Part shown: in pieces, positions 2,634 through 62,300 of the stretch
Position numbering within the stretch: position 1 is the stretch's first letter
How the letters are laid out: every line of letters begins with the position of its first letter
Origin: Cyanophora paradoxa CCMP329
Taxonomy: Eukaryota > Plantae > Glaucophyta
Direction of reading: 5' to 3'
Length of the DNA: 64,000 nucleotides
Assembly (NCBI GenBank): GCA_004431415.1
Contig: QPMI01000507.1
Location: 1 to 64,000, forward strand
Notes under the pieces: model-generated
What the model saw: the letters and a program-made list of their open reading frames with translations, nothing else
Told to the model about the DNA's origin: nothing
Database searches by the model: none
Made by a program: the position numbers and the translations under genes

Positions 2634-5600
2634 TGAACCGTGTGTCGGCGGGGGCGTTCGGCGCGGACGCCGGGGAGGGCGTCCTGTGCTTCGTCGCCTC
2701 CCCGAAGGACGGGTCCCTCATCGCCGCCGTCGGCGACCCGTCCGCCGCGAATTCGAAGGACTCCCACCTCGTCAAGGTGCACTTTGCGCGGTCGCTCAAG
2801 GCTGCCGCATGTGCACGCGGGCGGGCCGCTGACTCGCGCCACCGCCCGGCTCCGCGATCGATATCGCTTGCGATCGCAGCTCAGCGCGCCGACATGGACG
2901 ACGGTGGCGGCGACGTCGCGGGAGCTCGGCCTGACGCAGGCGGAGGTCGAGGGCGGCCCCAAGGTCCTCCAGAAGGGCGCCATGAACTGCACCATCGACG
3001 CCGCAGGTGCGCATAATTGAATAGAATATAAATATATATTGTACATGTGCTCGCGCTCGAGCAGCTCTTGACGGCGCGTGCGCTGCAGGGCAGTACGCGT
3101 ACTTCGCGAGCTCGCGGGAGGTGATTCAGGTCGACGCCGCCACGCTCGCGACGACCGCCACCTACCAGCTCGATCCGGACAGGGCCTACGGCGTCGTTGC
3201 GATCCACGCCGCCGGCAATCATGTGCGTCTGGCCCCTCGCCATTGGACAATTCATATTAATAATTTTGCGAACTGTATCACAGGTTTACGTCGTCGCTTC
3301 CCGCCGAAGCGCAGTGAGCATGAGCGGCGACAGCCCCGTCGGTCGTGTCGATCGCCTCAATACTGCGGCGGTCTCGGCCCCGACCTCGGGGGCCATGAAG
3401 CGGGACCTGCGTGCCGTGGCCATGCGCCTCGCCGTCAACCAGTCGGTCGATCTCCCCGCGACCCTCGGCCGGCCGCGCGCGTCGGTCCTGGCGCCCACGG
3501 CGGGCCTCCTCTTCGTGGCCGGCGACGGCCTCGGGGCGCGGGTGCTCCGCCTCGACGACATCACCGTCCACGCCGACGCGCCGCGGATCACGGAGGGCAG
3601 CGCCGCGATGGAGGGCCCGTACAGCGGGGCCGTCGTGGAGAAGGACGGGCGCCTCTACGTCCTCTCCCTCCCCAACCCGCCCCCGACCCCGACGCCGTCC
3701 CCAAGCCCTAGCCCGAGCCCGTCCCCTTCCGCGACGCCGAGCCCGACTCCGGCTCCCGTTTGCAATCCCTGCATGTTCAGACGGGCCTTGCTCGCGGCCG
3801 CGGGGGGCGCCGGCGCTCGCGAGGAGCACGGGCGGTCGCTGCTCTCCTTGCCGAGCTGCGGCAATTGCGCGGGCGGACAGCTACCTGCGGGGCAGTCGTG
3901 CACGCAGTGCTCTGCTCCTGCTCCTTATTGCCCACCCGGGGTAATTGGCTGCGGCCCTCCTCCCATGAGAATTCGCCGCTCTAGATCTCTCCTTTCGGAC
4001 GCTGCGGGCGCGCACGCCCTCCTCACGCTCTTCCACTTCGGAGTTTCTGGTAGCTCGTGCGCTTATGCATATATATGTTTACGATTGTTTTCGTTTCTTT
4101 CCATTCATGTGCATGATACCCCGGTATCGTGCTGTTTGCAGCGTGACGATCTCGCGCAATGACACGTATCGCGCTGAGCTCTCGGTGCGCCGAATCGCAC
4201 TTTTGTTAATAAAAAACAAGTCCGACGTGCACATCAACATGTTAATGCTTGATGTCGCTGCGCAGGCCTCCTCTCCGTCCTCCTCGAGCCTGCCCTTCCT
4301 CTTCTTCCCCTGCGCCTCCGTCATCCCCGGCGCCAACGCCGCCCCGACTGACGCGCGCGCCTACGCCATCGTCCCCTCGGAAGGCGGCCACGGTGCTTTT
4401 GCACGCGTTTCTCGGTTTCACTTGCGGAATTCGAAGGACGCTCATCGCTGACCAGCGGCCGCTTGCGCATAGCGATCGCGGCCTTCTCGCTGTATCCCTC
4501 GCTGAGCAAGGTCGGGACCGCCAGCTCGATCAACGGCAACCTCTCGAAGGTCCTGCAGGTGCGACTCGCAATTCGCTTCAGCAACGCTGGCGCCATCTCC
4601 GGTTTTTCCGGCTCTCAAATTCGACTGCCCTTCAGGTGGTCCGCGCGGGGCCGAACAGCGCCACCGTCTTCATGGGGGTCCCGGGGGTGCCGACCCCCAC
4701 GCCGTCGCCCAGCCCGAGCCCGTCGCCGTCTGCGACCCCGAGCCCGACCCCGTCTGCGACGCCGAGCCCGTCGCCGACGCCGATCCCGTTGACGACGCCG
4801 AGGCCTTGCACACTCTCAGAGTCTGCTTTGAAAACAAACGCCACTCTAGATCTCGAGCTCGATCTTTGTCAGCGGGCATTCCCATGTGCGCGAACTGCGT
4901 TGCCAACGCCCTGGCGGATGGAGCAGCGTGCGAGCAGTGCTACCAATGCGTTTCTTGCAACACCCCTTGTCGGAAACGTGCACTGCTTGAGGAGAAGAAC
5001 GTTAACGCGTCGACGGCTGCGGTAACGATCGCAAACCCGACGCACAGGCGCCTATTGGCGGAAGGTGACGGCGGCATTGTGCTCTGTCCGGGATGCAGAT
5101 TGTCGGCCGATTGTGATACGTCAATTGGATTTGTGAGATCAGGAGGCTCCTGTGGCGGTTGCCCCAGCACTAGTCGGCATTCACGTTCAATTCTTGACTA
5201 CGAGAGAGATACTGACACAGGCGAGTGCGATGACTGAGAACTCGAATGACGTGCACGTTACATTAACGTATATTTTTTTTTCAGGATAGCCCAATTCTTG
5301 GGCGGTGGTTGTATTCTCAGACCACTGACTTCATCGTATGCACTACCGGTTCGGAATAGGCCGAACTCTGGGTCAGCTCATGACCTGTGGCCGGTACACA
5401 GGGATAGGCGCTTCGACGCTAACTCTAAGCGTTCAGTGTGGCCTTGGGGGATAGCTTGGGCGGGGCGTCCTTCTTGGGCTCGCGTTGGCGGTACGTTGTC
5501 GGTAGGGGGGGTGGGGGGGGGTGGGGTGGGGTGGGGGGTAGTACAGGCCTAGGGCGGTTGCACGTCCCCCTATCGTTGGGCGTGAGAGGCGCGGGGCGGG

Positions 5601-8600
5601 TGTCCCGGGGGGGCCGGGATGGGGCTCGGTACGTAAGGGAGGGGTGAGCACGGGCTAGGTGGTGGCCCAGCAGGGCCGGGGCTAAGGTGTGGGGCGAGGG
5701 GCAAGGGTGGCCTGATCGGGGGTCTTGAGCGCGCGCCTGGCATTGCTTCACATAGCGTACATGACAGCTGTGTGTCTCGCCCGGGAGGGGAGCCAGGCCT
5801 TGAGGCCGCTCAGGGAAATAGAAAATGATTAAATGAAAGAAAGAAAGAAAGGGGTGGCCGGAGGCCCCAGCTCTAGGAGGGTCCTAGAGAGTCTACGCCG
5901 CTACGTTGTCCGCTGCCGCGGCGCGGCGGCCGGCGAGGTAGGCCTCTACGGCGGCGGGGCCGCCGATGGCCGCCGTGAGCTCGGTGAGGAGCTTCTGGGT
6001 GGCCTGGTAGTTGGCGAGCGTGATGTTGGCCGGGGCGGGGCCGGGGGCGGGGGCCTGGCCCGGAGCGGGTGCTGGGGCGGCGATCGGCGCGGGGGCGGCG
6101 GCGGCTGCCGCGGCCGCGGCGCTGGCGGCGGCGGGGTGGGGCGCGGGGGCGGCCGGGGCGGCGGGGGCGGCGGCGAGACTATTCGTCTTTCATCTCCTGA
6201 AGAGACTCTGGAGGGCACGGGAGGAAGGCGGCGGCGTACATGTTGACGGACGCGATGATGGCCGTGGCGATGTATACGCGCTGGTGGACGCGCATCCCTC
6301 GCAGGTTCCAGCGTGCGCGGCGGCTGCGCATGCCGTCAACGCGCTTAGCCCAATAGGGGCGAGCATCAAAGTCACCATGTGGGCCGAGGGGGATGCCCAG
6401 CGTGGACGTCGTCTTGACCCAGCGGATCGGGATGGACTGGGTCCATTCCGGGAGCACCGTTGGTTGGCCGGGTCGCTTTACCGGTGCTGCTGCGCCCGCC
6501 AGCATGCCCTCGGTTTTGCCCAGGTTGAGCGAGGAACCGTTGTATTTCCCCGCTTTCCGGTACTTAGCTATGGTCTTCTTGACCGGGCGGCCGGGATCGG
6601 GGCTGCGGTGATCGATCTTGAGCGAGTGCGCCGCGTCGTCTGCATATTGGACTAGCTTGGATTCGATCCGGGGTTCTCGGGGGGCGGGTACACCGGTAAT
6701 TTCCGGGTCGGCGAGGATGTCGCGTGTGGTGGGCTCCTGTTGCGTGTTGAAGAACATACAAGCGAAGGGGTCGCCCTGAAGCGCGCTGCGTGTCACTGGG
6801 ATGATGATGGGGAAGATGGTCCCGTTGATCATCAGTTTTGATCTCGCGCCTTTCGTGACGGCGCGGACGTCGGCTAGGAATTCCAGTGGGAATCCCTGTA
6901 CTGCGAGGACGCGGAGTGCATAGAGGTGCTCCACACGGTCGTACGCTTTCTCGAAGTCGGTGTTCAGAATGACTACGTGCATGCCCTGCCGATCCGCATG
7001 ACGGATTACGGCTTGCATCTGCCAGACGTTGTCTGAGCCGCAGCGGTCCTGCATAAAGCCCGTCTGCACGGAGCTGATCGTGTGCTGGCATGCGGGTGCA
7101 ATGCGCTTGGCTAGGACCGCCCCGAATAGGCGGCGGTCGATTTGCAGGAGGGTGATCGGGCGCCAGTTCTGTATCTTATCGCGGTCGCCCTTCTTATAGA
7201 GCAGTTGGATCAGGCCCGTGCGCTGGCGCTCGGAGAGGGTGCCCAGGGCCCGTGCGCAGTTATAGCTCTCCGTGACTATCGGGCCGAGGATGTCCCAGAA
7301 CGTGATATAGAATTTAACGGTGATGCCGTCCTCGCCCGGCGCCGTGGACTTATTCATGTCTTTAAGGCACGTCTCGACTTCGCCGACCGTATAGGGGGCG
7401 CGCATCGGGGGACGCAAGTGCGGGGGCGCTGTGTCAGTGCAGCGGGAGAGGAGCTCCGCCTCCTCGTGGGAGAGGGGGTCCTCGGGCGTGAGGAGGTAGG
7501 CCGCGCGGAGCTTGGCCACCACCTCCGGGAAAGCCTCGGCGGCTTCCGGGGTCACGTCCACTGGGCCCGAGAGCCCTGTGTTCGTTCTCGGGCGAGCGTC
7601 GTCCGGCTCAGACCCCGATGCATGCGAGCGAGCGCCGTCTGGCTCAGACCCCGCGGGTGTAGCTGGGCGAGCATAGGAATGCTCTTGCGCCCGTGGAGCT
7701 GGCGGGGCCGGCGGATTCGACCGCAGTGGCGGAGGCTGCGGCAGGGTCGCTGGGAGGTCGGGGGGGAGCGGACGCTGTGCCGTGAGGAGCTCGGTGTAGT
7801 ATGCGCAGGCGTAGGCCGCCATGTCCTCCTCCGTCGTCGCCGCGGGGGTACCCTCGCTGGGGGGGTACGGCTGCAGGGAGCGCATGCGGTTGTCAGCCGA
7901 AGAGTACTTGATGTGGCGGGCGAGGTCCGGGGGGACGGTGTGCGCGTGCGCTAGGGAGCGCTCTAGGTGCTTGCGAGAGCTAAGAGCGGCGTCGGCGGCG
8001 TCTAGCGCGGCTTCCTGAACGGTGAGGTAGCCCATGTCGGCGATGACGTAGTCTTCTTCAGTCGTGTTTGGCTCGGCGTCTTGGAGCGCCTGTTCCGCGT
8101 CGCGCCAGAGGCCTGCATTCGTATCGCGCGCTTCGCGGCGGGCCGAGTCAGCGTGCGGGCGGGATCGGCGGGCGAGCTCCCTGTACTCGGCGAAGAGGTC
8201 ATCGAGCCATCGCTGCCAATCTGCGGTGTTACGGGCCGGCTGGCGCTGGAGCGCGGCGGCCGTGAGCTTCCGGACTTCCCTCTGGAAGTCGGGCAGGCGG
8301 AGAACGCTGTCGAGGAGCCGGAAGCGGGACTTGCGGGGCTCCAGCACGGCGTCGGTATGCAGGCGCGCGTAGACGGCGTCGTGGTCGGGGCGTGGGGCCG
8401 CGCCCGCCGTGCGGAGGATGCCGACGCGTTCTGCGGCTACGCACAGGTCAGCCGAGAGGAAGACGTGATCGAGGCGCGCCGCGTTCTGGTCGAAGCGGTT
8501 CGTCTTGCGGTGCCAGCGCGTGTAGATGCGGTCGCGGGGACGCCGGCGTCGGTGCTCATCAAACAGGTTCAGGTCTGCGAGGAGGGTTTTCCAGTGCCCG

Positions 8601-11460
8601 AACGGGGGCGGGGCGCCGGCGCGGCGCCGGCTCTCTAGATGCGGGAGTGCGTAGGCATTGAGATCGCCTCCGAGGATGAGGGCGTCGTCCGGGGGGATCG
8701 CCAGGGATTCGATCGCAAGGGTTGCGCCCTCCGCTAGGCGCTTCTGCGAGGCAGCGTCGTTAGGCGCATATACGCAGATGATATGATACGCGTTTGTATC
8801 GCTTTCTAGGCGCAGGACTGTGACGTCGTGCGGCGCGACGCCGGGCGTGGAGGGGAGGGGGACGAGCGCCGCGGTCGCTCCCGGGAGAGCCGGGATGTTC
8901 TTGCGGACGAGGAAACCCGTTCCTCTGCTCCAGATGTTGGGTTTGAGCTCTGCGGCCGGCGGAATGAGCACTCGCCAAGCGGGTTCGATGCGCTGGGCAA
9001 AGTTCGCGATCTGGCGCGGGCGGAGTCGGTGGTCTATGATGCCCAGGACGTCCACTTTGGTGCGTTTGAGCCAGCCTGCGAGCCAGATGCGGCGAGATAT
9101 GCCTGCGAGGCTTTCGACATTCAAAAAGGCGACCGTGAGGAGGGGGCGGGTCGTCGGGGCGTCCTGGGGCGCTTCCGACGTGGTTGCTGCCTCTGTGGCG
9201 GTACTTGCCGCCATGGGAAGGCGGCTGGGCGGCTGGGGGAGGCTGCAGCTCGCGTTCGGTTGAACTAAGCTACGGAGCGTCGGCCGCGCGAGTTTTGGGA
9301 CCAGCCACGTGCAGTGCTAGCGGGCACCCGCGTTTGGGAAGCCCCACTGCGCCGGCTTACTCGCTCGCGGGCCTTCGCTCAATTTTCCGGGGTACCGGAA
9401 TCCACATTAACGTATATATACGTATGCAAATGCAGGACGCTCACGTCGCTCTCTGTTGGAGGGAGTAACCACCTGTTCCGGGGCCATGGCCAGCTGCCCG
9501 TCGATCGTCCAGTTTTCGCTTCCCGGTGATTGCACATTCAAAGATGCTCATCGCTTTCATAACACTCGAGCGACTGACCATTTCATATTTTTGCTTTTCT
9601 TTCAAACTCGCCAGACTCCTGCTGCAAGCTTGGTATGACGCTCATAATCAATAATCAGTTATCTATAAAACTAATCATGCTCCTATTCATTTGTAATTGC
9701 GCAGACGTCACGTGGGGCGCGATCTCGCCGGTCAACAGCAGCTCGCTGGACGGCACGGTCGCCCGCACGATCGCCGGCGCCGGGTTCCCCACCGACGACC
9801 CCGCGCTCTCCCTCGCCGTCGGGAGCGTCGTCGTGTCGAACCTCGCCGTCGCCTCCAACGGCTCCCTCCTCAGCTTCCTGATCCCCGCCCCGTCCCAGAA
9901 CCCCAGCAACACCGCCGCCGTCGGTTCGAATTCGCGCTGCCGTGAAATGCCATTTCGCCACTGGCCATGGATTCACCCATTCGGACTTTTCGCAGAGACG
10001 CTCTATGACATCGTGCTGAACACGTCGTGCGGCGTGGCCACCTTGCCCAAGTCGTACATCTTCTTCCTCCCGGTATTTTTCCCCGCCGAGCCGACCAAAC
10101 CCTCGTCCGACGGTCATTGTAAATTTGCGCATATGAATTGTTCTTGCAGGGCGGCACTGGGAGCCGGCTGCAGGTCATCGGGATCCGCAAGCGGGTGCCG
10201 GTCGTCAGCAACGAGACAGTCGCCATCAGCTGCACGGTTCGGGTCGTTGGACTGCAGATGAAGTCGTTCGACTCACGATCGCTCCGGACTGCGCATGCAG
10301 GGCTGCAACTTCGACCCGAATGATTTCGTCGAGGTGCTTTAGTTTGTAGCTTTCAGATCGACTTCGATCCCATTCGAAATGGAATTCCGAATTTCGCGAC
10401 GGCGACGCAGGTGTACATCCAGATCCCGGCGGCGAACAGCCGGGGCTGGGTCATCCCGGGGCCGGCCGGCTCGGGCGCGTACATCTACCGCGGGCCGGCG
10501 GGGACGTGCGGCATGAAGGCCCCGAACGCGACCGTCGTCTCCGGCTCGCAAGTCGACTTCGCGTCGCCCGTCTTCAGCGCCGCGTGCATCAAGGACAACT
10601 TCCGCCGCTCCGCGCTGCAGGCGGACCAGAGGGCGCTCAACACCCCCTACGGTGCGCTCGCGATCGAATCTTAAGCTAAATATAAATTTAAACTTGCAGG
10701 AATACATCTAAATGCATCTAGATCTACATTACTCTTGCAATTGTCTCTGACGAATCCCCTGCAGACGTGGTGCTGGTGTCCGCGCAGCAGGGCCCCTTCT
10801 TCATTCCTGCGGTGGGTCACGCACGGCTATCTTCTAATTTCCCATTGAAAATCTGCGCGCTCTAATCATGCGTGGAATTGCCGTTTCGCAGGCGTTCGAG
10901 TGGTTTGATGTGCCGGTGGGCGTTCCCACGACCTTCGCCCCGTACCAGTCCATCGAGACGAACGTGCGCACACTCGCGCAACGTACTACGGTATGATCGC
11001 AAAACTCGCCTGATCTGGGGCCGCGCAGGGCCTACCGGGGTACGCGCCGGCGGTGATCATCCCCGTGGTGCTCGTCATCTGCCTGGTGGGGGTCTTCACC
11101 TACCGCCGCCGCTGGCGCCGCCTCCGCGAGTTCGTCGACGTCCAAGTCGCGTTCGCCGGGCGGGCGCCCGGGGCGGAGAGCGTCGCGGCGGCGATCGCGT
11201 CGTCGCTGCGGGCGCCGCGGGTGGCGGCGGTCGGGCTGAAGGGCGACGGGCGGGGGGCGGTGGTGCGGGTGCACGACGCGCAGCACCGGTCGACGGGCGA
11301 GGTGCGCCGCGTCACCGAGGAGGTCCTCGCGTGGGCGGCCAAGGCCGGGCCCGGCTCCTCCCTCGCCGGGCGCGAGGTCGCCTCTGTCCAGCTCCTCGGC
11401 CAGCCCGCCGCCCTCGACGGCCTCGAGGGCGGCTTCTTCGTCAACCGCGTCTCCATCTAG
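2634..11460 (+). CDS. Type-I membrane surface protein, copy 1 (beta-rich ectodomain, two Pro/Ser hinges with Cys-rich cassettes, IPT/TIG-like domain, TM, cytoplasmic tail); possibly disabled
   Basis: Exon-by-exon match to 31572-36458 on the minus strand. PTPSPSPS hinges at ~3680-3755 and ~4690-4800. IPT-like AISPVNSSSLDGTVARTIAGAGF at ~9715. TM IIPVVLVICLVGVFTY-RRRWRR at ~11055. Frame shift at ~4815, LINE in the 5221-9435 intron, and no signal-peptide exon seen upstream of 2634. Confidence 0.7.
5273..9403 (-). mobile_element. Non-LTR retrotransposon (L1/Tx1 clade), antisense inside an intron
   Basis: Poly(A) tail seen as T-run 5273-5281. TSD ACATTAACGTATA at 5260-5272 and 9404-9416. Contains an APE+RT ORF. 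Confidence 0.93.
6179..9214 (-). CDS. LINE ORF2: APE endonuclease + reverse transcriptase (1011 aa; C-terminus appears truncated)
   Basis: APE motifs FLNVESL, VYAPN, LGGDLN, RLDHVF, PDHDAV. RT motifs APGEDG, LLYKKGD..NWRPITLL, DFEKAYDRV, QGDP, YADD. No C-terminal CCHC domain. Confidence 0.95.
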   Translation of the reverse strand: MAASTATEAATTSEAPQDAPTTRPLLTVAFLNVESLAGISRRIWLAGWLKRTKVDVLGIIDHRLRPRQIANFAQRIEPAWRVLIPPAAELKPNIWSRGTGFLVRKNIPALPGATAALVPLPSTPGVAPHDVTVLRLESDTNAYHIICVYAPNDAASQKRLAEGATLAIESLAIPPDDALILGGDLNAYALPHLESRRRAGAPPPFGHWKTLLADLNLFDEHRRRRPRDRIYTRWHRKTNRFDQNAARLDHVFLSADLCVAAERVGILRTAGAAPRPDHDAVYARLHTDAVLEPRKSRFRLLDSVLRLPDFQREVRKLTAAALQRQPARNTADWQRWLDDLFAEYRELARRSRPHADSARREARDTNAGLWRDAEQALQDAEPNTTEEDYVIADMGYLTVQEAALDAADAALSSRKHLERSLAHAHTVPPDLARHIKYSSADNRMRSLQPYPPSEGTPAATTEEDMAAYACAYYTELLTAQRPLPPDLPATLPQPPPLRSNPPAPPAPRAQEHSYARPATPAGSEPDGARSHASGSEPDDARPRTNTGLSGPVDVTPEAAEAFPEVVAKLRAAYLLTPEDPLSHEEAELLSRCTDTAPPHLRPPMRAPYTVGEVETCLKDMNKSTAPGEDGITVKFYITFWDILGPIVTESYNCARALGTLSERQRTGLIQLLYKKGDRDKIQNWRPITLLQIDRRLFGAVLAKRIAPACQHTISSVQTGFMQDRCGSDNVWQMQAVIRHADRQGMHVVILNTDFEKAYDRVEHLYALRVLAVQGFPLEFLADVRAVTKGARSKLMINGTIFPIIIPVTRSALQGDPFACMFFNTQQEPTTRDILADPEITGVPAPREPRIESKLVQYADDAAHSLKIDHRSPDPGRPVKKTIAKYRKAGKYNGSSLNLGKTEGMLAGAAAPVKRPGQPTVLPEWTQSIPIRWVKTTSTLGIPLGPHGDFDARPYWAKRVDGMRSRRARWNLRGMRVHQRVYIATAIIASVNMYAAAFLPCPPESLQEMKDE

Positions 11461-11881
11461 GCGGCCCGCCAGCCGCCGAGCTGTAGATGCAGCAGGCCAG
11501 GGTCGAGAACTACTTGCAAATTGGCTTTAATTTGACGGTTTGCAATTGATCGTGCTATAGCTAGCGCTCATATTTCTGGTAACTAAGCATGCGCATGCCC
11601 TGCAGCTGGTAGTTTCGAGTTCGTATGTTTCGCATCGATGGTAGTTTCGAGTTCGTATGTTTCGATCGTACGTATACGTATACCGGCACCATGCATATGC
11701 ATATGGCAGCAGCTATATATATATATGTGTACACATGTATATATATACACGCAGGCCTAGCCTACTAGGCTAGTAGCTATAGGCAATTGCAATTGCAACC
11801 TGAGGGATTTTAAATTTCGTTCTTTTCGAATTCGACAACTAGGCAATTTCGACTTCAAATAAATTTGCATCCCGCGGCCGG

Positions 11882-12162
11882 TGTCGCGTGCGAGATTAGT
11901 GTGTCTAATCGTGCGCGCGGGAAGCCCGTGCGGAGTGCAAGCTCGGCAGGGCGGGGAATGGCGAGTGTCGCTGCTGTAGTCGCTAAGATCCAACTCACTG
12001 GGTGTACCCGTCCAGATACGGCGTACCCCGACACAAATACAAGTGACCGCGGCGCTCTAACTAGCCTAGGCGCCGTCGGTCCAGCAGCTCGAAGGCTGAC
12101 GTGATCTAGAGCCCTAGCGGCTCACATATAAATGAGCATCCGCTATAATGTCGGATGCGACA
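11882..12162 (-). repeat. 3' LTR (281 bp)
   Basis: Appears identical by eye to 16824-16981 plus 17854-17976; TG...CA termini with a 6-bp inverted repeat. Confidence 0.93.
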
Positions 12163-12177
12163 ACTCCTCCTCTCGGA
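12163..12177 (-). other. Polypurine tract of the LTR element
   Basis: Minus strand TCCGAGAGGAGGAGT directly abuts the 3' LTR. Confidence 0.85.
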
Positions 12178-14781
12178 TCCCGCGTCCGCGCGGGTCTAAA
12201 TAAATACATATCGACCGGCTACTGCCGGGAATCGAAAAAGGCTCAACGTCCGTCCGTGTCCGGCAACTGCCGGGAATAGAAAAGACACCAAGTCCGGCTA
12301 TGTACATGTCCATGGCCGCGGCGTTGACTGCCGGGAATAGAAAAGACTGATACCCGGCAAGTGCCGGCACGACTCCAGAGTGTACGTAGTGCCCAGGGGG
12401 CGAGGTCCAACTTCGGGCCGGCGGCCCAGGCAACCCGCACGAGGCGAGCGGAAGGGGACGGAAGCCGAGGGGGCCCTGCCCTCATCGCGATTGTGCAGCA
12501 CGTTAGCTGCAAAGGCACACGCTGCAACAGCAACGCGGGGCGCAGCGCTCGCGACAGCGCTCAGCAGCCCACAGCGAAATGCCCGTCCCAAAACTTAGGG
12601 CTAAGCAGCTCGACTAGCGCCGCTGCTCAGGCAAACACCGTGCCTTCACTGCATTATCACGGCGTCGGATCGGGAATCCCCCGACGGCGGTGGAGCTAGA
12701 ATCTCCAGGGCGAGGCTAGACGCCGCCCACAAGGTGCCCTTCCACGCCATTGCGCGACGGGAGGTACCCTGCCCGACCCGCGGGTGCACATCTATTAAAA
12801 GGGGACGTGGCCCTCTCAGGCGGCCCGCCACCAAGCGTCCCTGGTGCGGAGCCCTGCTGGGGGTATTTTTGCTTCCCCGTCGTCGTACCCGGGGCAGGAA
12901 CCCGGCGTCACGACCGCCTGCGTGTACCCCTGCCGGCGCAAGGCGCGCCCTGGTACCACGCCAGGTCTTACATGGAGGGGGAATTTGTCATCCCCTGTCG
13001 CTGTACCCGGGGCAGAACCCGGCGTCACAGCCGCCCACCGACCCTTCTGCAGACGCAAGGCGCGTCCTAGGGCTCGGCTAGGTCTTTGCAAGGGTCTCCC
13101 GCCCTGTCACCGCGCCGAGCTGTGCTCAAGGCTTACGGCCGCCCGCGGCTCATCCTTCCGCTCGGGACTTACTGAGGGACGCTTGCCCTGTCGCCGTGCC
13201 GAGCTGTGCTCAAGGCCCCCGGCCGCCCGTGGCTCACCCTTTCTGCCCGGGACTTTCGCGATGTTTCGCGGGGCTCGGAGGCCCGTCTCAGCCCAACCCT
13301 TCACGGGTGGCCTCTTGTGCTCGCGCTGCTCGGAGGCAGGTATCGCCGCTTCTTGTCCTCGCCCTCGTGTGGGGCCGGGACGCGGCTGGGAGCCGGCTTT
13401 CTCAAGCCGCTCCTGGCCAGGACCACCCCCCGTCACGACCGCCCTGGGGCCGGACCGGCCACATGCGAGACGGGACTCACAATCATGGGTGTCCTTCTGG
13501 CGCCGCCTCAACAGGCTGGCCGCCGGGTCTCAAAGCTCTTAGCTTGTGAGCAGGGCTCGCAGCCCGTCGCACCACTCGGCCTGCCGCAGTGCAGCCGCAG
13601 TGTGCCGCCTGGATGCCAACTCGTCGGGCAGTTCACCAGGTCTTTGGGCTGGGCACTGGGCCCCTCGCCCCGCTAACGTTCAGTCCGGATTTCGGAACAG
13701 ACACGCGCGGCCTGGGCGCCAACTTGGCGGGCGTCACCAGGACTTGAGTTCAAAGAACTGCAAAGCTCATGGCAGAGCCTGCTATTGCCTGGCCGCTTCG
13801 GGGCGCGCCGGGACTTTATTTCAGGGCTCGAGCTCTCGAGGGCACCGTGTGCTCAAGCTCGGAGGCTCACGATTTTTGCAGGGGCTCACGGGCCGCCTGT
13901 CAAGCTCACGGCATGCCATCAGGCGCTTGCTGGCCGGGCGTCGTGCCTCAGGCATCGAGCTTCTCTTGAGAGTGTTTTCCGGGCTCAAGGCTCCGCGGAT
14001 TACATCTCATTTTGCAGCGGCAGCTAGGCCGCTCGCAGGCCATGGCCAAGGGGCTCACAGCATTGGCTGCCGCGGGGGCCAGCTTCAGCTGGGGCTCAGG
14101 CTCAAGCTCTGACTGCAAAGCCTGAGGCCACTTTTCTGGATTTCGCAAGGCCCGTGGCCGCACTCAGCGATTGCAGTGCGCCGCGCGAAATCGCAGGCTT
14201 TCGACGAGAGAATCTCGGAGGTACTCCTCCTCTCGGAAAGACTGGTACCCGCTCGGGTTTGAGATCAGATTTGGGCCACCGGCCACAGATCTAGATTGAG
14301 GCAAGCAGAAGTGCTCGCAATAGCGGCACCGGCGCCTCTTCGCAGCTTTGCAAAAGAGGTACTCCTCCTCTCGGAAAGAGGGGCACCCGTGGCCGCTCAG
14401 GGTGCTCGACAGCACTCGATTGAGGCTCTCTTTCGCGAGTGCTATTTGATCTTGGCTATTTGATCTTGGCCAGCGGCCACAGATCCAGGCAAGCCTCGGG
14501 GCGGGAGGGCGAGCGGCAGCGCTTGCACTGCTCGTGCAGCATGCCCGTGCTCACTCCTCCTCTCGGAAGACGTCGTCCCCGACGTCTGAAATTATGTACA
14601 AATGTACAAATATACACCCTGCTCAGAGGCAGGTATATTGGCCGCTTATTACAGCGACACACGGGGCTCTCGCAGGGGATCGGAGGCCCAGGCTCCGCGA
14701 AAAATCGGATCGCGGTTACAGCAGGGCTTTTTCTGGCGGCTGCCCAAGCCAGCCAGACCCTAGTGCAGCTGGTGCACTTGC

Positions 14782-16347: not shown

Positions 16348-16798
16348 ATTGCTCTCTTTGCAGCGTATAGCCACGAGAACAGAATGCCAGGGCGCAAGAT
16401 TTGATCTGCAGCGCACTGCAGATCCGGGACACGGTCTTCTCGTGGCGTGCGAGAACCGACTCAGGGACACTCAGAGAACTGCCGCTGGCAGACTCCGGGG
16501 CACAGTTTGCGACGCGAAGCGTGCAACCGGCGAAGGGACACAGACAATGATTGAGACTCTCGCGAGAGCTCGTGCGTGCGCTTCGGTCTGGGGATGCACC
16601 GAAGCCCGCGAGGGACACTAGAGTCACTTCCGAAGCACAATCAGCCCGCCCAGAGGCGACGCGGCCGAAGTGTGCAGCGTAGCACGCCACAAGTGGCGGT
16701 CGCCCGGAAAGCTCGTCCCAGATCTCTCTAAGCTTATGCGAGGCGGCGCGGCGAGGCGCGCGGCGCGGGCAGAGCCTGGAAGTCCAGCGACCCTTGAA

Positions 16799-16823
16799 GG
16801 TTCGATTCCGGCAGAATGGCGCC
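16799..16823 (-). other. Primer-binding site, complementary to a tRNA 3' end with tRNA-Sec-like geometry
   Basis: Plus strand reads GG-TTCGATT-CCGG-CAGAATGGC-G-CC immediately inside the 5' LTR. Confidence 0.8.
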
Positions 16824-21622: not shown

Positions 21623-21792
21623 CTCTTCCGCTGCAAGTTCTGCTCGGTCCGGCGGGTACAAGAAACCTCGGCAGCCCGATCAAATTTGCGAAATCGGCGC
21701 GGGTTTCGACTTCCAGACGGTGAGCGATGCGCGAGGGCGGTGCAAAATGCATCTCCACGCCAAGCCGAGCGCACGCGCAGGTCGCGACAACG

Positions 21793-37135: not shown

Positions 37136-37440
37136 CGTCGCCCGATGCTTCTCTGCAGCTGCTGCGGCTCTAGTTTCACCTGCTGCTGCAGGCTGCATGC
37201 TGCTGCGTGCGATTGCCCCAGTGCGCACTGCCAGCTGCACTGCGGGCCAGCCGCCAGCTGCTCTGGGGGGTAGATTGTATGGGACGACTGACCGCGGCGC
37301 CGGCGCCGCGCACGACTCTGCGGCACGAGCAGCAGGACTCCCGGGAGCGATCCCGGACTCCGGAACTTTTTTTTGGACCGGAAGTCCGATCGAGTTGCCA
37401 GCTGCAGACGGCGACTCGTCGGCGAGAGGCTGCGACGCTA

Positions 37441-37829
37441 CGAGTTATGGGCCTTAGGCGGAGTTTCCTGGCGAACTGGGGCCAAACTCCAGGGGCCTGA
37501 AGCGGCTGGCAGATCTTGCCCTTATGTAAATTAGCTACCGGGTAGGTTCTAGTAGCCTCCTGGTACAGTCCTAGTAACCGCCGGCTAGTAAGTTAGCAGT
37601 AACTGCCAACAGCAGCTTTTATATAGCATGTGAAATATACCGGCACGTGCCCAATCGGAAAACACTGGCATTTTCAAGTCGAATTAGTACGGGGACCTCG
37701 ACGGTCCCAGCGCAGTACTAATTTGAGTCAAAAGGTGTTCCCAGTCTAAAACTCGGCCGAGTTTTAGTCAATCGACTTGACTCGGAAAAAGTTTGTATGG
37801 CGGAAACTGCGCCTAAGGCCCATAACTCG
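37441..37829. mobile_element. Tc1/mariner-type MITE (389 bp)
   Basis: 28-bp TIR CGAGTTATGGGCCTTAGGCG(G/C)AGTTTCC with one mismatch, flanked by TA on both sides. Confidence 0.85.
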
Positions 37830-37968
37830 TAGCGCGAGCCTGCGACGTCGACGCCGGGCGTCGCCGGCAGGGAAATACTAGCCTAGTAGGGAGAGCCGCG
37901 CTGAGCAGGCTCCGTGGACTCGGCCGCCTCGGCGTAGAGCAGGAAAATACTGCACGCAGAAAATTAGT

Positions 37969-38023
37969 GGAGCCCGAAATTAGTGGACCGAAAACTTGAG
38001 TCAGTCCACTAATTTCGGGCTCC
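37969..38023. repeat. Perfect 20-bp inverted repeat, 15-nt loop
   Basis: GGAGCCCGAAATTAGTGGAC ... GTCCACTAATTTCGGGCTCC. Confidence 0.9.
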
Positions 38024-51646: not shown

Positions 51647-52935
51647 TCAGGCGCGGGTGCCAAGGAGGGCGAGGACGGCGGCGAAGTCGCTCCTCTTGAA
51701 CGGCTGCCGGCGCCCGTCAGCGCGATGGAGCCCTCGGAGGGGCTGCAGCTGCAGGCCCTAGGGGGCCGGGCCCTCAAGATCTAGATTTAAAGCTTCGTTT
51801 CCAGCCGCGGCCGCGACGCCCTGGAACTAGCACTAGATCTGGATCGGACCCGCCCGCGGCCGCCCTATATATATATAGCTAGGCGCAGGGCCCCGGCCCG
51901 GGCCCCGGGCGCCCCGCGCTCGCCTTGGAGATGTAGGCGCGCATCCCCGCCCGCGTGTGGGCCCCGCGCGCCCCGCGCTCGCCTTGGAGATGTAGGCGCG
52001 CATGCCGGCCCGCGTGCACTCCTCCTGCACGCCCCCGACCTGCCGCCCCGCCCCGCCCCGCTCAGCACTCGCGCGCCGCTAGCTGCAGCTCGCCGGGGCG
52101 GGCGGGGGCGGGCGCACGACGTCGGCGGTGACGGCGCAGACGAGGGGCGGCGGGCGCCCGATCGCCGCCGCGTGTGCCAGGATGCGCTGCGTCGCCTCGA
52201 TGCCGCCCATCACCGGCCTGGTCGCGATCGCCGGCCCCGCGCCCCGCCGGCGTCAGGCACGGGAGGAGAGCGCCGGGGAGGGGAGGGAGGGAGGGGGCTG
52301 ACATGTGGAGGTCCATGAAGACGAGGCGGGCGGCCGCCGGGTCCCGCCGGTACGCCTCCACCGCCTCCGCACCTGCCCGGGCCTCGGCGCCGGCGGGGCG
52401 GCGCGGGGCGGGCGGCGGAGGACCGTTGGAGTGGACGGCGACGGTGCGGCAGCCGAGCGCCGCGAGGAGCTTCGCGATCAGCTGCCGGCCCGTCAGCGCG
52501 GCCGCGCCGCCCCGCGCCGCCCCGAGCGGGCCGCCGCGGAGGCGCGGGGCACCTTCTGGTTGACGGCGTTGTCCTCCACGACGAAGACGCCGACGCCCTT
52601 GCCCTCGCACGCCGCCTCGGGGGCCGCCGCCGGCCCGCGGGGGCGGCGGCACCCGGCGGCTGCTCCTCCTCCGGGCGGGGAGGATGCGCGCGAGGGCGCG
52701 CCGCAGCTTGGCGAGGGTCAGCGGCTTGCGGCACCTGCGCCTTGGTCAGGGCGGGGCGGGGCGGCAGGGGGGCGGGGGCGCGCCATGTGGTCGGAGGGGC
52801 GGGGCGAGGCCTCCTCGCGTTCGCGCTCGGCGGCCCCGCCGGCGGCGGACCGGCCGCGGAGACGAGACGGACGGCGCCGTCGTCGCAGCTCGCGATTGCC
52901 GGGCCCGGCGGAGGCGCGGCGGGCGGCGGTGGCAT
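51647..52935 (-). pseudogene. Partial duplicate of the histidine-kinase 3' end: stand-alone receiver-domain gene or pseudogene
   Basis: ~51640-52850 is nearly identical to ~59320-60380, introns included ([28 protein letters not shown]). It has a different 5' end, a 2-nt loss at ~52733 and a tandemly duplicated exon end at ~51908-52003. Confidence 0.7.
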
Positions 52936-53702
52936 GGGGCTCGCCGGATCCGGACGGGGCGTTTTTGCAGGCGCGGCGGGCGGCGGCGGGGCTCGCTATA
53001 CATGCGGGCGGAGGCGCGCGGCGAGCCCTTTTCTTTGTTAACGTTCAACCTCAGATAGATTCGAGTTTGAATCATTGCAATTTGCAAGTGAATATTGATT
53101 TATAATGATATAATGAGCAGCTGCAGGCCTAGGCCTAGGCCTGGACCTCGAGCTTCTCGGGGGCACTATAGCTAGGCTAGCGCTGCGCCGGGGCGGCGCG
53201 GCCGAGCCCAATTTCAACTGCCAGCTGCAGCCGGGCCTAGCAGATGGCCCGGGCGGCCATGGGAGGGAATCGAAGGGGGGGGGGGAGGGGGGAGGGGGAG
53301 GGGGGAGGGGAGGGGGAGGGGGGGGGAAGGGGGGAGGGAGCGGGGGCGTCAGGCAAGGGCGGCCTCGTAGGCATCGGGGAAGTAGTAGGAAAGGACGGAG
53401 GCGTAGCGGTGCACGGCCCCGTACGCGATCACCACCGGTGGAATGAACCTGCCCAACGCCCGCGCGCGCGCAGCTCAGGTGAGCCGAGCCAGGCGACAGA
53501 GCGGCGAGGCCGGTTGCCGCGGCCGGGCCGGGCCGGGGTGCAAGCTCCAACACTAGAGCTAATCTTAATTTGCGAAGCGCGTGCACGCACATGCAGGCCA
53601 GGATCCACTTGTTGGCGACGAGGAACCCCCACCCCGTGGACCCCTGTTCGAGCAGGCGGCGTCGGACACAACGTCAGGCTGCAGCTCGTGATCGAGCTGA
53701 AA

Positions 53703-57142: not shown

Positions 57143-57578
57143 GATCAAGGCCGGAGAAGGCAGCCCCCAGCTGCATGCAGCTGCAGCTGCAGGCCTTGCA
57201 ATTGGCGCCGGCGGGTTGCAATCGCGTTGCAAAAACTTGCAATCGCAATTGCATAAATCTGATCATGAGCTCACGCCCGGCTGTACACGTACATGTACAT
57301 GTGCACGTGTGCAATTGCAAGCGGCGACATGCACAGATGCGCTACTCACGATGGTTGTCCGACGGATCCCGGATAAAGCGCGCGCTGGCTACGTTCCAGC
57401 CGTTTTACCGCGGCCGGATCCCGCCGGGCCGGAATCGGGATCTCGCGCGAGCCGCGGCGCCTCGCGATCGGCTCACAGGCTACCAGTAGCTATAGAAGGA
57501 CATGCACAGCCCGGCAGGCGATGGCCGCGCAGCTACGTATACAGCCGCGCCACTGCCATGCTGCGCGCGCCAGCTGTA

Positions 57579-57960: not shown

Positions 57961-58447
57961 TATACGGTACTGCCACTGGGCCAGGGGCTGTCACAGTGTC
58001 TTTACGTATACACTGTGACATGTGCACCAGCTGCAGCCTGCGCATGCAGCAGCTCCGATCGCGATCGCGAGGCCTGCTAGCGCTGAGCTGATCCGAGGCT
58101 GATCCGATGATCATGATCATGATCAACTGCGCGTGCATATATATATGCATGCATATGCATGTGTGCAACACACTACTATGTGCACATGCCGGCGGCCGCC
58201 GGGCCGGCGCCTAGCTATATATAGCTGCTGCCAGCCTCAGAAGCTAAAGGGCCTGCTGACGTCGACGGGCAGCTGCCAGCTGACCATGGAGGCTGCAGCT
58301 GCTGCGCGGCATGCAGTGCACGTGCGCGGCGCTGCATGCCACTGATGCCAGGCTGGCGCCAGCTGGCGAAAATCACGCCTTCGAATCCCGCGGCATTAAT
58401 ATTCCCGCCCGCTCCACATAATTCAGATCGATCATGTCCCACGGACC

Positions 58448-58865
58448 CAGGGCTGTTAGCCGGAATATTCCAGCCTGGAACGTTCCCGGAATATTAGAAA
58501 ATTTCGAGAAAATTTTCGCGTCCCGTTTGCAGGGGGAAAATTTTAGGAAATTGAATATAATTTAATGATTATTTATTCATTTTCATCCCTTTTCTGCGCC
58601 CCCTCCCCCCCCTTCTGACCCCACCAGGGGCCTTGCATTTCCGTCTCCAAGCTCCAGAAGGCTGTATACTGTCTCTCAGAATGCTTAGTGTGATGTTATA
58701 AATTATCTTAGTGCTTCGCAGCTTTGAACGTGTGTCTGCGGTGCGCAACGCACGGTATTGAGAATTTTCCAGGATTTTGTGTGGTGGAATATTCCGGGAA
58801 CGTTCCCGGAATATTCCTCAAAATTTTCTGGTCCATTTTGGGGGGGTAAAATTTTGACAGCCCTG
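58448..58865. mobile_element. hAT-type MITE (418 bp)
   Basis: TIR CAGGGCTGT(T/C)A. Perfect 8-bp TSD CACGGACC at 58440-58447 and 58866-58873. Subterminal GGAATATTCC/GGAACGTTCC palindromes at both ends. Confidence 0.92.
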
Positions 58866-59322: not shown

Positions 59323-62300
59323 TCAGGGGTGGGCGCCGAGGAGGGCGAGGACAGCGGCGAAGTCGCTCCTCTTGAACGGCTGCCGGCGCCCGTCAGCGGG
59401 ATGGAGGGACTGCAGGGGGCCCTCTAGATCTACATCTAAAGTTTCGGCTCCAGCCGCGATGCACTGGCCCTGGCACTAGATCTGCAGCTGGAGCCGCCCC
59501 TGGCGCAGGGCTCCGGACCCCGCGCGCCCCGCGCTCGCCTTGGATATGTAGGCGCGCATGCCGGCCCGCGTGCACTCCTCCTGCACGCCCCCGACCTGCC
59601 GACCCGCCCCGGCCCGCCCCGCTCAGCACTCGCCGCCAGCTCGCCGGGGCCGCCGGGGGCGGGCGCACGACGTCGGCGGTGACGGCGCAGACGAGGGGCG
59701 GCGGGCGCCCGATCGCCGCCGCGTGTGCCAGGATGCGCTGCGTCGCCTCGATGCCCCCCATCACCGGCCTGCCCGCCGGCCCCGCGCCCCGCCGGCGTCA
59801 GGCACGGGAGGAGAGCGCCGGGGAGGGGGGGGGCCCACATGTGGAGGTCCATGAAGACGAGGCGGGCGGCCGCCGGTCCCGCCGGTACGCCTCCACCGCC
59901 TCCGCACCTGCCCCGGGCCTCGGCGGCGGCGCGGCGCGGCGCGGAGGGGCGGGGACCGTTGGAGTGGACGGCGACGGTGCGGCAGCCGAGCGCCGCGAGG
60001 AGCTTCGCGATCAGCTGCCGGCCCGTCAGCGCGGCCGCGCCGCCCGCGCCGCCCCGAGCGGGCCGCCCCGGAGGCGCGGGGCACCTTCTGGTTGACGGCG
60101 TTGTCCTCCACGACGAAGACGCCGACACCCTTGCCCTCGCACGCCGCCTCGGGGGCCGCCGCCGGCCCGCGGGGGCGGCGGCACCCGCCGGCTGCTCCTC
60201 CTCCGGGGCGGGGAGGATGCGCGCGAGGGCGCGCCGCAGCTTGGCGAGGGTCAGCGGCTTGCGCAGCACCTGCGCCGCGGTCAGGGGCGGGGCGGGGCGG
60301 CAGGGGGCGGGGGCGCGCCATGTGCTCGGAGGGGCGAGGCGAGGCCTCCTCGCGGTCGCGCTCGGCGGCCCCGCCGGCGGAGGAGGCGGCCGACGCGGCG
60401 GAGGGGCGGCGGGCGGCGGGGGCGGGCCCCGGGGCGCCCGAGGCGAGGAGGAGGACGCGGGCGGCGCGGCAGCCCGGGAGGGAGGAGGCGACGAAGGCGG
60501 CGAGGGCGGGCGCCGGGTGGCTGGCGGCGACCCCCAACAGCACGGCCCGCACCTCGGGCCGCCCCGCCGCCTCGTGCTCCTCCTCCCAGTGCGCCAAGCT
60601 GCGGGGCAGAGGAGCTCAGAGCAGAGCAGAGCCGAGAAAGGGAGAGGGCGAAGTGCGGGCCTGGGGACGGCGTGCACGGTGGCGCCCATCTCGCGCAGCA
60701 GCGCCGCGCACATCTCCCGCACCTGCGGGTACGCGAGCGTTGGGGGGGGGGTGGAGGGTGGGGGGGGGGAGGCGGAGTGGGGGAGGGGTACTTTGGGGGA
60801 GGCGTCGGCGACGACGACGGGGCAGGGGGCCGGGAGGGCCCCGGGGCGGGGGAGGACGACGGGGGAAGACGACGAGGGGCCCCGGCCCGGGCCCGGGGCG
60901 GCGCCGAGGGCGAGGCGGGCGGTGAAGTAGAAGACGGAGCCGACGCCCTCCTCGCTCTCGCACCTGCGCGCCCGGGGTCAGAGGGGCCGGCGGGGAGGCG
61001 GGCGCGCGGGGGCGGGGGCGGGGCGGGCCAGATGTCGCCGGCCATGGCGCGGCAGAGGGCACGGGAGATGGAGAGGCCGAGGCCGGAGCCGCCGTGCCGC
61101 CGCGTCGCCGAGTCGTCCACCTGGGCGAACGGCCGGAAGAGCTTCGGGATCTGCCCCGAGGGGATCCCGATCCCTGCCGCCCCGCGCGGTGAGCGGCCGG
61201 GGCGGGCGCCCGCGTCGAGCCTGGGGCGCGGGGCGGGGCGGACCCTGGTCGTGCACGGCGAAGAGGAGCTCCACCGAGTCGGCGGGGGCGGGGGCCCCGG
61301 CGGGGGCCGCTGGGCGCACGCCGGCGGCGGGCGAGGGCGGGCCCGAGGCCGGCCCCCGCACCGAGACCCGCACCCACACGTCCCCCCGCTCGCTGAACTT
61401 GAGCGCTGCGCCCGCCGCCTAAGCCGAGCAGCCCGGGCGCGGAGGCGGCGCGGGGCCGGGGGGTACCGTTGGAGAGGAGGTTGATGAGGACCTGCTTGAG
61501 GCGCACCTCGTCCCCCACCAGCTCCCGGGGCACCCCTGCGCTGCCTCAGGGGGGGCCCGGGTGTGGGGCCCGAGGGGGCGGGGCGGAACCGGGGTCGATG
61601 AGGAAGGAGAGCTCGACGGGGGGCCGCAGCTGCGCGCGCCCCTCAGAGCGGGCGGGGCGGGGGCCCGCGGGGGGCCCTCCCCGCCGCCCCGGGCTTCTAA
61701 TCTAGGTTGCAGGGAGAGCTGTGGAGGTGCTCTAGGTGGCGACATCGAGGAGGGGCTCGAGGAGGGGCTCGAGCTCGAGTCGGGGCAGCGGGGCGGGGCG
61801 GGGGCGGGGCACCTGGGAGGCGACGACGCCGACGGCGGCGTCGAGGAGGGCGGGGAGGTCGAAGGGGCGCGACGCCAGCTCCACCCCCGCGCTCTCGATC
61901 TGCCCCCGCCCCCCAGCCCCGGTCAGCGGCCGGGCGGGACGCCGCGCCCCACCTCCCCCGCAAAACGCGCCTTGGCGTAGTCGAGGATGTTGTTGACGAG
62001 GGCGAGCAGCGCCTGCCCGGGGGTGAGGGCGGGGGCGGGGACGGGGGCGGGGGGGGGGGGGGGGGGGGGGCGGCGGGGCGGGCCTCGCCGCAGGAGGCGA
62101 GGGTGTCGACGAGCTCGCGGGCCTCGTCGGAGAGGCCCGGCTCCCCCGCCAGCAGCGCCGCGCTCCCGATCGTCCCGTTCAGCGGCGTCCTCATCTCGTG
62201 GGAGATGACCGAGAGGAAGCGGGACTTGGCGCGGGAGGCCTCCTCCCTGCCCGCCCCGTCCCCGCTCGGACCAAGCGGGGCGGGGCGGGGCGGGGCGGGC

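Follow-up and report, generated by a model that had tools for sequence, protein, structure and literature searches.

Short palindrome-building indels in Cyanophora paradoxa as a possible 3-bp inverted triplication process

In a 64-kb stretch of the Cyanophora paradoxa CCMP329 genome (contig QPMI01000507.1, positions 1 to 64,000; hereafter the window) intergenic DNA is rich in short palindromes, and short palindrome-building indels separate the copies of two young duplicate pairs. The question is whether one mutational process writes both. The first-pass annotation had spoken of a mutator which extends palindromes; palindromes are indeed built, but this wording is too vague, as the exact rule is a micro inverted triplication with a unit of three nucleotides. 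The reading favoured here, with a probability of about 0.6, is that this GC-rich algal genome is subject to a mutational process, recurrent and sequence-unspecific, which converts a trinucleotide X to X·rc(X)·X, where rc is the reverse complement (XrX below). The event is a 6-bp palindromic insertion which shares half of its sequence with the flank, and amounts to a spacerless inverted triplication of 3 bp.

Indels between two young duplicate pairs

Both duplicate pairs, one inverted and one direct, are real. In the alignments (self-BLAST and MAFFT) 123 of 3,798 well-aligned columns carry substitutions (3.2%). The LINE which interrupts one copy contains a reverse transcriptase plus endonuclease ORF at 6179–9214.

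2625–4783, forward strand: paralogous copy a, first part, exons plus introns of a surface-protein gene, aligned with 36466–34151
9432–11503, forward strand: copy a, second part, aligned with 33610–31529; split from the first part by the LINE insertion, which copy b lacks
31529–36466, reverse strand: paralogous copy b, which duplicates copy a in inverted orientation; contigs of four public runs have it without change
51959–52856, forward strand: direct duplicate pair B, copy 1
59515–60392, forward strand: direct duplicate pair B, copy 2

The rule is simple: the short allele is X (3 nt), the long allele is XrX and the net difference is +6 nt. It fits 8 of about 10 6-nt indels between the copies (six without deviation, the other two apart from one or two additional substitutions), and such indels are found at a rate of about one per 12–15 substitutions in the young pairs. 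Two abutting units of a single 12-nt difference also obey it, and three further units lie inside a 24-nt insert. In every event the middle unit is the reverse complement of the flanking X, and the X·rc(X) junction is loop-free, with the palindromic bases contiguous with the flank. The motif is met in introns, in intergenic DNA and, in frame, in exons.

2749–2757, forward strand: X=GAA (GAATTCGAA), exonic, adding Asn-Ser; copy a long, copy b (36336–36348) with only GAA; polarity ambiguous
35795–35803, reverse strand: X=TGG (TGGCCATGG), GGCCA to GGCCATGGCCA, intronic; copy b long, copy a (3228–3239) short
9484–9492, forward strand: X=CCA (CCATGGCCA), GGCCA to GGCCATGGCCA; copy a long, copy b (33555–33567) short
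32686–32694, reverse strand: X=AGA (AGATCTAGA), AGATC to AGATCTAGATC; copy b long, copy a (10353–10362) short
32756–32764, reverse strand: X=GGA (TCCGGA to TCCGGATCCGGA); copy b long; one-unit slippage would also account for it
32141–32149, reverse strand: X=GGT (GGTACCGGT), exonic, adding Pro-Val; copy b long; polarised as an insertion
52222–52230, forward strand: X=TCG (TCGCGATCG); pair B copy 1 long, two substitutions nearby
52080–52088, forward strand: X=CAG with one C>T change (TAGCTGCAG), adjoining a GCGC insertion
4845–4860, forward strand: two abutting units, X=TCT and X=CTC; copy a +12 nt relative to copy b (34110–34118), alignment less secure here
32790–32825, reverse strand: 24-nt insert in copy b, three units (TTG, GTC, TGC) plus 6 unexplained nt
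11512–11525, forward strand: copy a longer by 7 nt, the X=TTG form with an additional A

Most of the changes singled out by the first-pass annotation could be recognised among these events. The AGATC indel and the 12-nt gain at CACTCT..TTT are present, the latter in the less secure part of the alignment, and the two-codon changes announced for exons are the Asn-Ser and Pro-Val events. The GGCCA change, thought to have occurred twice independently, exists at two sites, but X is CCA at one and TGG at the other. The CTTGGC (~11513) and GCCAGCT (~52079) indels contain the motif apart from the extra A and the C>T change respectively, whereas the CCCTGG indel at 51863, placed in the same class, is a 15–16-nt (TA)n/TAGCTA difference to which the simple rule does not apply. 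Outside the rule there are also TGAGCA (3315), a CACG tandem duplication (10818), a 21-nt tandem repeat and (GGGA)n slippage.

The expectation that the long forms would be carried by independent sequencing data was borne out. They occur without any difference in contigs or unitigs of four independent public runs (a unitig covering 32637–32883, with the X=AGA event, is identical in all four), and an assembly artefact is therefore excluded. No indel polymorphism was seen among the four runs, hence there is no sign in them that the process is active now.

Over-representation of the motif and of palindromic arrays

All enrichment counts cover the 64-kb window alone. The direct-inverted-direct order of adjacent units found in ten indel events is repeated in 379 9-mers of the window, compared with 52.0 ± 6.4 in local dinucleotide shuffles (7.3x) and 84 expected from hexamer counts (4.5x), with the excess present in all GC classes; the suspicion that these sequences are more palindromic than composition predicts is thus confirmed. 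The density is about 6 per kb over the whole window, and nearly all X are used with no target preference among them. Of these 379, among which dinucleotide runs are not counted, 281 are isolated, and a decay tail is visible, since one-mismatch forms number 1,576 vs 955. The densest stretch outside an 870-bp insert in an LTR is the following.

36500–39000, no strand assigned: intergenic DNA with 13.6 XrX per kb, 21x the shuffled value

The excess is specific to the arrangement and to the length of the unit. Control arrangements (X-X-rc, X-rc-rc) and partial forms stay at 0.8–1.4x; among the latter, X followed by one palindromic (P) nucleotide and X gives 1.3–1.4x, and with two such nucleotides 1.15–1.2x, against shuffles. 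The two-sided form X-rc-rc-X reaches 2.1x (n=10). In the window no excess was found for units of two nucleotides (1.04x) and no order-specific excess for units of four (3.1x vs 3.5–3.6x for control orders), while units of five and six give 12 matches each, apparently palindromic hexamer arrays, which were not separated out in these counts. Self-BLAST of the window returned no larger inverted-plus-direct triplets, and a nested-event test gave no signal (4 vs 5.1 in controls). It can be said that the register is fixed at 3 nt, and that switch points and fragment lengths do not vary.

Hexamer palindromes outside XrX number 1,385, against 1,370 ± 27 expected, from which it follows that the entire excess of hexamer palindromes lies within XrX motifs. 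The spacing between palindromes has a sharp peak at offset 3. Among perfect period-6 tracts, 18 of 47 have palindromic units, and none do for periods 5 and 7–12. The palindromic products which had been noticed in intergenic DNA are all present, as are the palindrome runs at 36520–36700 and 38370–38505 and that listed last below.

17135–17155, no strand assigned: (GCTAGC)n array, part of a 56-nt palindrome which is near-perfect and lies in the 870-bp insert in an LTR
35768–35783, no strand assigned: (TGATCA)n array in a copy-b intron; copy a lacks it
58107–58125, no strand assigned: (TGATCA)n array
53125–53142, no strand assigned: (AGGCCT)n array
57176–57192, no strand assigned: (CAGCTG)n array
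11669–11798, no strand assigned: intergenic run of overlapping palindromes with (TACGTA)n, (ATGCAT)n and (CAATTG)n

These observations support the view that the XrX indel class accounts for the palindrome-rich non-coding DNA and for the palindromic hexamer arrays.

Polarity and other explanations

Polarity, which had been assumed, is only partly resolved by comparison with further paralogs. The Pro-Val event (X=GGT) is an insertion, as judged by one moderately good outgroup, the paralog P0009, in which both residues are missing. The LINE paralog P0004 has two-residue insertions of its own: one, giving Leu-Glu-Leu, is absent from the nearest relative P0005 and three other copies, and one, giving Glu-Leu-Glu, is absent from the three copies which extend that far (P0005 stops short of it). 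In-frame CTC-GAG-CTC and GAG-CTC-GAG would encode just these residues. The Asn-Ser event (X=GAA) is ambiguous and may be a deletion, given that paralog P0007 reads Ala-Asn-Thr-Thr-Lys there. Probably the majority of the events are insertions; whatever their polarity, the enrichment requires a process that creates XrX.

The best placed of the other explanations, though an unlikely one, is that the indels are precise, palindrome-specific deletions in which slippage from one direct copy of X to the other, over a hairpin-prone centre, reduces XrX to X; XrX itself would have a separate source. Inverted triplications are known to be excised precisely via slippage over a hairpin (PMC13334657), the 21-nt indel outside the rule is itself a deletion between direct repeats, and Asn-Ser may be ancestral, as P0007 has Asn at that place. 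Against this, pure loss would deplete a motif which is 4.5–7x over-represented and holds all of the palindrome excess, the Pro-Val event polarises the other way, and a 6-nt palindrome is too short for a stable hairpin to guide deletion. Generic microhomology deletion could not yield a proportion of 8 in about 10 either, because only 11% of X-N3-X 9-mers (456 of 4,102) have rc(X) in the middle.

Somewhat less probable again are excision footprints of cut-and-paste transposons, in which a 3-bp target duplication would be joined by three P nucleotides from a flank hairpin opened three bases from its tip. The sum of the two parts is exactly X·rc(X)·X, flanking-DNA hairpin intermediates are established for hAT, Transib and RAG, and elements with terminal inverted repeats occur in the window (37436–37834). 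Footprints vary in length, yet forms with zero, one or two P nucleotides and the two-sided form are enriched only 1.15–2.1x vs 7.3x for the exact motif; moreover X shows no target preference, and none of the polymorphic sites showed an element still in place. A density of 6 per kb for the window as a whole, rising to 13.6 in intergenic DNA, also sits badly with a genome for which a low repeat content and little, if any, recent expansion are reported (PMC6704402).

A slightly smaller chance still is given to ordinary slippage in microsatellites whose hexamer units are palindromic by accident. Slippage of this kind would suit the arrays of 2.5–3.5 palindromic units that exist, the excess of arrays among XrX (98 of 379 vs 28 expected) and the GGA event, which is a clean gain or loss of one unit, but whole units of a pre-existing tandem are involved only in that event and in the arrays. 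Elsewhere the short allele is mostly X alone, which is only half a unit and offers slippage no repeat; the many isolated motifs and the confinement of reverse-complement symmetry to period 6 among periods 5–12 are left unexplained. Finally, chance, base composition, codon structure, selection for palindromic sites or assembly artefact may be dismissed as highly improbable, and this reading is refuted for the window within the controls used: some motifs of GCC-GGC-GCC type do arise in GC-rich coding DNA and in E. coli the same motif is weakly in excess, 1.6x, at low counts (12 vs 7.5 expected), but shuffle and hexamer expectations both miss by 4.5–7x in all GC classes while control arrangements remain near 1, nearly all X are used, and the sequences are carried by four independent runs.

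Relation to known systems and a possible mechanism

The conversion of X to XrX is a 3-bp, spacerless version of small inverted triplications and short template switches, which are the closest known things. Small inverted triplications arise when replication goes wrong at the junctions of Okazaki fragments (Lei et al. 2026, PMC13334657), with two template switches of a 3' flap as proposed origin and reversal through slippage between direct copies leading to a dynamic equilibrium (PMC13334657). They have the same direct-inverted-direct architecture, and such gain and loss fits the mixed polarity of XrX indels. Their dimensions are different (~148/160/148 bp with a ~30-bp spacer and 6-bp junction homology, against 3/3/3 bp with neither), and they are rare and linked to FEN1 loss (PMC13334657), whereas XrX is fixed in a wild-type genome at ~6 per kb. 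In the four-point model of short template switches (Loytynoja and Goldman 2017, PMC5453318) a nearby stretch is copied in reverse complement before the original template is resumed, which creates or perfects inverted repeats and mutation clusters. The new XrX sequence is likewise the reverse complement of adjacent sequence. Template-switch events have no constant size or place and mostly substitute new sequence for old, unlike XrX, where the 3 nt just made are always copied, with return to their start and a net gain of 6 nt. Large DUP-TRP/INV-DUP rearrangements and origin-dependent inverted-repeat amplification (PMC11293582, PMC10766183, PMC4689423) also yield inverted triplications, through repeated switching of templates at replication forks, but proceed at kilobase to megabase scale, mediated by pre-existing inverted repeats.

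Two end-processing systems are more distant. In P-nucleotide addition (V(D)J coding ends, hAT and CACTA footprints) the added bases are also the loop-free reverse complement of the adjoining flank. P tracts are short, variable and accompanied by deletions and untemplated bases, while in XrX the tract never departs from 3 nt and a second X invariably follows; the barely enriched partial forms (1.15–1.4x) argue against sloppy P-nucleotide addition. Polymerase theta (snap-back, alternative end joining) also makes insertions templated from the flank, some of them inverted. Its snap-back synthesis requires a loop and microhomology and leaves heterogeneous fillers, often with deletions; XrX would be set apart by its exact 3+3 rule.

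XrX resembles a known replication error in miniature and seems to be undescribed, and no such mutational signature was found for any organism in the searchable literature. The mechanism which we infer would operate during DNA synthesis, in Okazaki-fragment maturation or repair, through two strand switches three bases apart: a 3' end would copy its last three bases backwards, off a same-sense strand or a closed fold-back, and would then return to the start of X. A loopless fold-back on a 3-bp stem is sterically implausible, so a template in trans or a covalent hairpin would be needed. XrX may sometimes be lost again through slippage between its two direct copies of X, and hexamer palindromes may grow into (X·rcX)n arrays by repeated events or ordinary slippage. 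Of the mutator proposed earlier, a specific, recurrent class of palindrome-building indels thus stands, while hairpin opening, fold-back synthesis and template switching are inseparable by sequence alone.

A tentative proposal, given slightly less than even odds, is that DNA synthesis or end processing in this lineage involves an activity which always turns around after 3 nucleotides, continually writing X·rc(X)·X at about one event per 12–15 substitutions. If true, every short palindrome, the microsatellites with palindromic hexamer units and many two-codon protein insertions would go back to one elementary mutation type.

Length differences between duplicated copies

GC content of the window ranges from 60 to 81% (2-kb windows), exons being GC-rich and introns and spacers lower in GC. 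Two duplications are present, one inverted and one direct, and both of them are young; 123 of 3,798 positions are substituted between duplicates (3.2%, well-aligned columns only).

Duplicated segments and the interrupting element
2625-4783 and 9432-11503, plus strand: copy a of the inverted pair, a surface-protein gene
36466-34151 and 33610-31529, minus strand: copy b of the inverted pair
51959-52856 and 59515-60392: pair B, direct duplicates
6179-9214, minus strand: intact LINE open reading frame (reverse transcriptase and endonuclease; region 5000-9400), interrupting copy a

The LINE is absent in copy b and was thus inserted after the duplication. Its protein matches EukProt models with names of the type tig000..._g....t1, the scheme used for the 2019 assembly of Cyanophora paradoxa. 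At 51895-52016 the first member of pair B has a segment of about 60 nt twice in tandem, of which the second member (59509-59572) has a single unit.

Alignments of the duplicates were read and every gap was then scored. The 6-nt indels between copies obey one rule: where the short allele has a trinucleotide X, the long one has X followed by its reverse complement and X again (XrX).

XrX differences between copies
2749-2757: exact 6-nt indel, X = GAA
35795-35803: exact 6-nt indel, X = TGG
9484-9492: exact 6-nt indel, X = CCA
32686-32694: exact 6-nt indel, X = AGA
32756-32764: exact 6-nt indel, X = GGA
32141-32149: exact 6-nt indel, X = GGT
4845-4860: 12-nt difference, two exact units side by side, TCT and CTC
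52222-52230: X = TCG, two substitutions beside the unit
52080-52088: X = CAG, one C>T within the unit
11512-11525: 7-nt insert, X = TTG plus one additional A
32790-32825: 24-nt insert, three units plus 6 nt unexplained

Long alleles are carried by copy a as well as by copy b. Indels of other kinds comprise TGAGCA at 3315, a CACG tandem duplication, a 21-nt tandem repeat, (GGGA)n slippage and homopolymer steps. The seven indels offered in the first-pass annotation as palindrome-extending are all real, and five of them are pure XrX, single or paired; its case at 11513 is the TTG insert with the extra A, and that at 51863 is a (TA)n/TAGCTA indel which falls outside the rule.

Contigs from four runs, representing different samples and years, were placed on 31480-36500. 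Every run shows the long forms unchanged, and unitigs covering 32637-32883 carry the AGA, GGA and chain events, so that these alleles, for which raw reads had been proposed as a check, are indeed present in independent read sets. No indel differences were seen in copy b among the four runs. An apparent loss of 6 nt at 32141 and gain of CGTG at 32238 are not polymorphisms, being due to copy-a contigs placed over copy b, on which four substitutions match copy a exactly. Contigs of three runs join 33264 back to 33179 with 34 identical extra letters between; this probably reflects a further paralog or a rearranged version of that exon.

Excess of XrX in the window

When mono- and dinucleotide runs are left out, 379 XrX 9-mers are found in the window against 52.0 +/- 6.4 in dinucleotide-preserving shuffles made inside 100-nt blocks. 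The window's own hexamer counts, which already absorb any general preference for palindromes, lead to an expectation of 84, that is a 4.5-fold excess, and the ratio to this expectation is 5.0 in low, 4.0 in middle and 3.6 in high GC. Fifty kilobases of E. coli used as a control contained 12 against 7.5. Nearly every trinucleotide serves as X, without clear sequence preference.

In the window, the same pieces reordered as X-X-rc or X-rc-rc reach 0.8-1.1 times expectation, partial forms in which two X flank a single palindromic base or a pair of them 1.15-1.4 times, and X of two bases 1.04 times; longer X showed no excess tied to the X·rc(X)·X arrangement. Two-sided palindromic forms stand at 2.1 times (10 cases). 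A complement-only middle gives 4.7 and a reverse-only middle 2.6 times; both figures include the cases in which the end bases of X match, so that the motif is at the same time X·rc(X)·X or X·X·X, respectively. The 4-nt palindromes GGCC, GATC, CCGG and TCGA at paralog events had first suggested a preference for existing palindromes of this length; the idea was dropped, as in the window the 2-nt extension class lies at baseline (43 versus 42) and enrichment is limited to full arrays.

Non-trivial hexamer palindromes number 2,082 against 1,370 +/- 27 expected; 697 lie within XrX and the other 1,385 are at expectation, so the entire palindrome excess of the window is XrX. Palindrome spacing has a sharp peak at 3 nt, with 379 pairs where the remaining offsets have about 80-135. 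Perfect XrX makes up 4.7% of the whole window; for low-GC DNA the share is 8.6%. One-mismatch derivatives amount to 1,576 against 955, as expected of a long-running process followed by decay through point mutation. The palindromic arrays reported in the first-pass annotation were also recovered, since 18 of the 47 perfect tracts of period 6 have reverse-complement-symmetric units, and such units are absent from tracts with periods of 5 and of 7-12.

Perfect palindromes with unique arms, of 32 nt and 22 nt, lie at 58786-58817, 37746-37767 and 676-697. Such arms cannot be made by repeated XrX, and it follows that the genome has, in addition, either hairpin elements or a process of inverted duplication that acts over a longer range.

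Origin and direction of the indels

Only 4 perfect XrX, and about 5 with a single-base difference in one copy, are common to both copies, versus about 9 that differ by a 6-nt indel. Together with the strong over-representation this requires a process creating XrX, whatever the direction of single events. It is considered probable, at roughly 0.6, that such a process is real; the implication of any particular enzyme is far less likely.

The architecture of XrX is that of an inverted triplication, and small inverted triplications (SITs) are the nearest known system. SITs occur in yeast rad27 (FEN1) mutants and in cancers, measure about 150 bp and contain a spacer; they are attributed to a 3' flap that invades or folds back, followed by a second template switch, and are removed by slippage over the hairpin (PMC13334657). 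The preferred reading of XrX formation is a micro-version of this process, with two template switches separated by three bases while a gap is filled or an Okazaki fragment matures, or else with an equivalent closed fold-back intermediate. Two-way behaviour like that of SITs would fit the mixed polarity of the indels. When each XrX was collapsed, another XrX with a different X came to light in 4 cases, and mock removals gave 5.1; this underpowered comparison speaks neither for nor against nested events.

Variable hairpin opening, which was among the mechanisms first put forward, and transposon footprints are disfavoured by the exact 3+3 register and by the absence of both a loop and partial forms. 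Footprints are further disfavoured by the low repeat content reported for the genome, for which the paper on the 2019 assembly (99.9 Mb, probably haploid) gives little or no recent expansion (PMC6704402). Generic microhomology deletion is unable to explain the indels because rc(X) is the middle of just 11% of X-N3-X 9-mers. Ordinary slippage cannot start, having just half a unit to begin from.

Direction was approached by outgroup comparison at the protein level with exons queried singly. The product of the duplicated gene (2633-4783 and 9705-11460, with its copy at 31529-36458) is a single-pass membrane protein whose spacers are rich in Pro, Ser and Thr, and the other members of its small family (P0006, P0007, P0009 and P0010) are only EukProt models on other contigs. 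P0009, with an identity of 84% over the C-terminal exon query and 77% inside the exon of the GGT event, has neither residue of Pro-Val, hence this pair was gained by copy b. At the Asn-Ser (GAA) site P0007 has three additional residues, with Asn at the matching place, and P0006 has one, so that a loss in copy b is possible. Polarity, which was assumed in the first-pass annotation, is settled in part by these comparisons. In the transmembrane exon a 21-nt indel outside the rule (copy a 11064 versus copy b 31989-32009) is long in P0009 and P0010; copy a has thus lost 7 residues between direct repeats. The LINE-protein paralog P0004 has private two-residue insertions. The one making Leu-Glu-Leu is missing in its nearest relative P0005 and in three further copies, and the one making Glu-Leu-Glu in all three copies spanning that stretch, P0005 stopping earlier. 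These residues are as would be expected of in-frame CTC-GAG-CTC and GAG-CTC-GAG (protein-level comparison only).

In the literature searched no description of the XrX motif was found for Cyanophora or elsewhere, nor did anything on palindromes in either Cyanophora or Aureococcus come up. If true, the process would be a mutational signature that is clean and can be counted, indicative of an unusual replication or break-repair step in a deep-branching alga. It would explain why introns and spacers abound in palindromes resembling restriction sites and in palindromic hexamer repeats, and predicts tripeptides of codon, reverse-complement codon and codon, such as Leu-Glu-Leu or Ala-Gly-Ala. The size range of inverted triplications would be extended from the ~150-bp and kilobase scales to 3 bp, constraining models of both template switches. 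Such events are prone to mis-scoring by aligners and indel models, and may be markers for dating duplicates.

Mobile elements and splice sites

An LTR retrotransposon with identical LTRs occupies 11882-17976, its second LTR holding an 870-bp insert (16983-17852). XrX density is low in young retroelement coding regions (1.0-1.5 per kb; LINE open reading frame 1.0 per kb), and the richest stretch of the window is this very recent insert, at 21.8 per kb. Density therefore tracks lack of constraint and not residence time; dating XrX by transposon age was rejected, density being no guide to polarity. The insert has a hairpin at its end, and a (GCTAGC)n array within it is enclosed in a nearly perfect palindrome of 56 nt. 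Two short elements with inverted repeats of 33-38 nt, 37436-37468 / 37802-37834 (97% complementary) and 38684-38721 / 38887-38924 (87%), may be miniature transposons. In the duplicated gene, the 5' splice sites at 2776, 3005, 3220, 10650 and 10963 read GTGCGC or GTGCAC, a conserved motif of unusual length.
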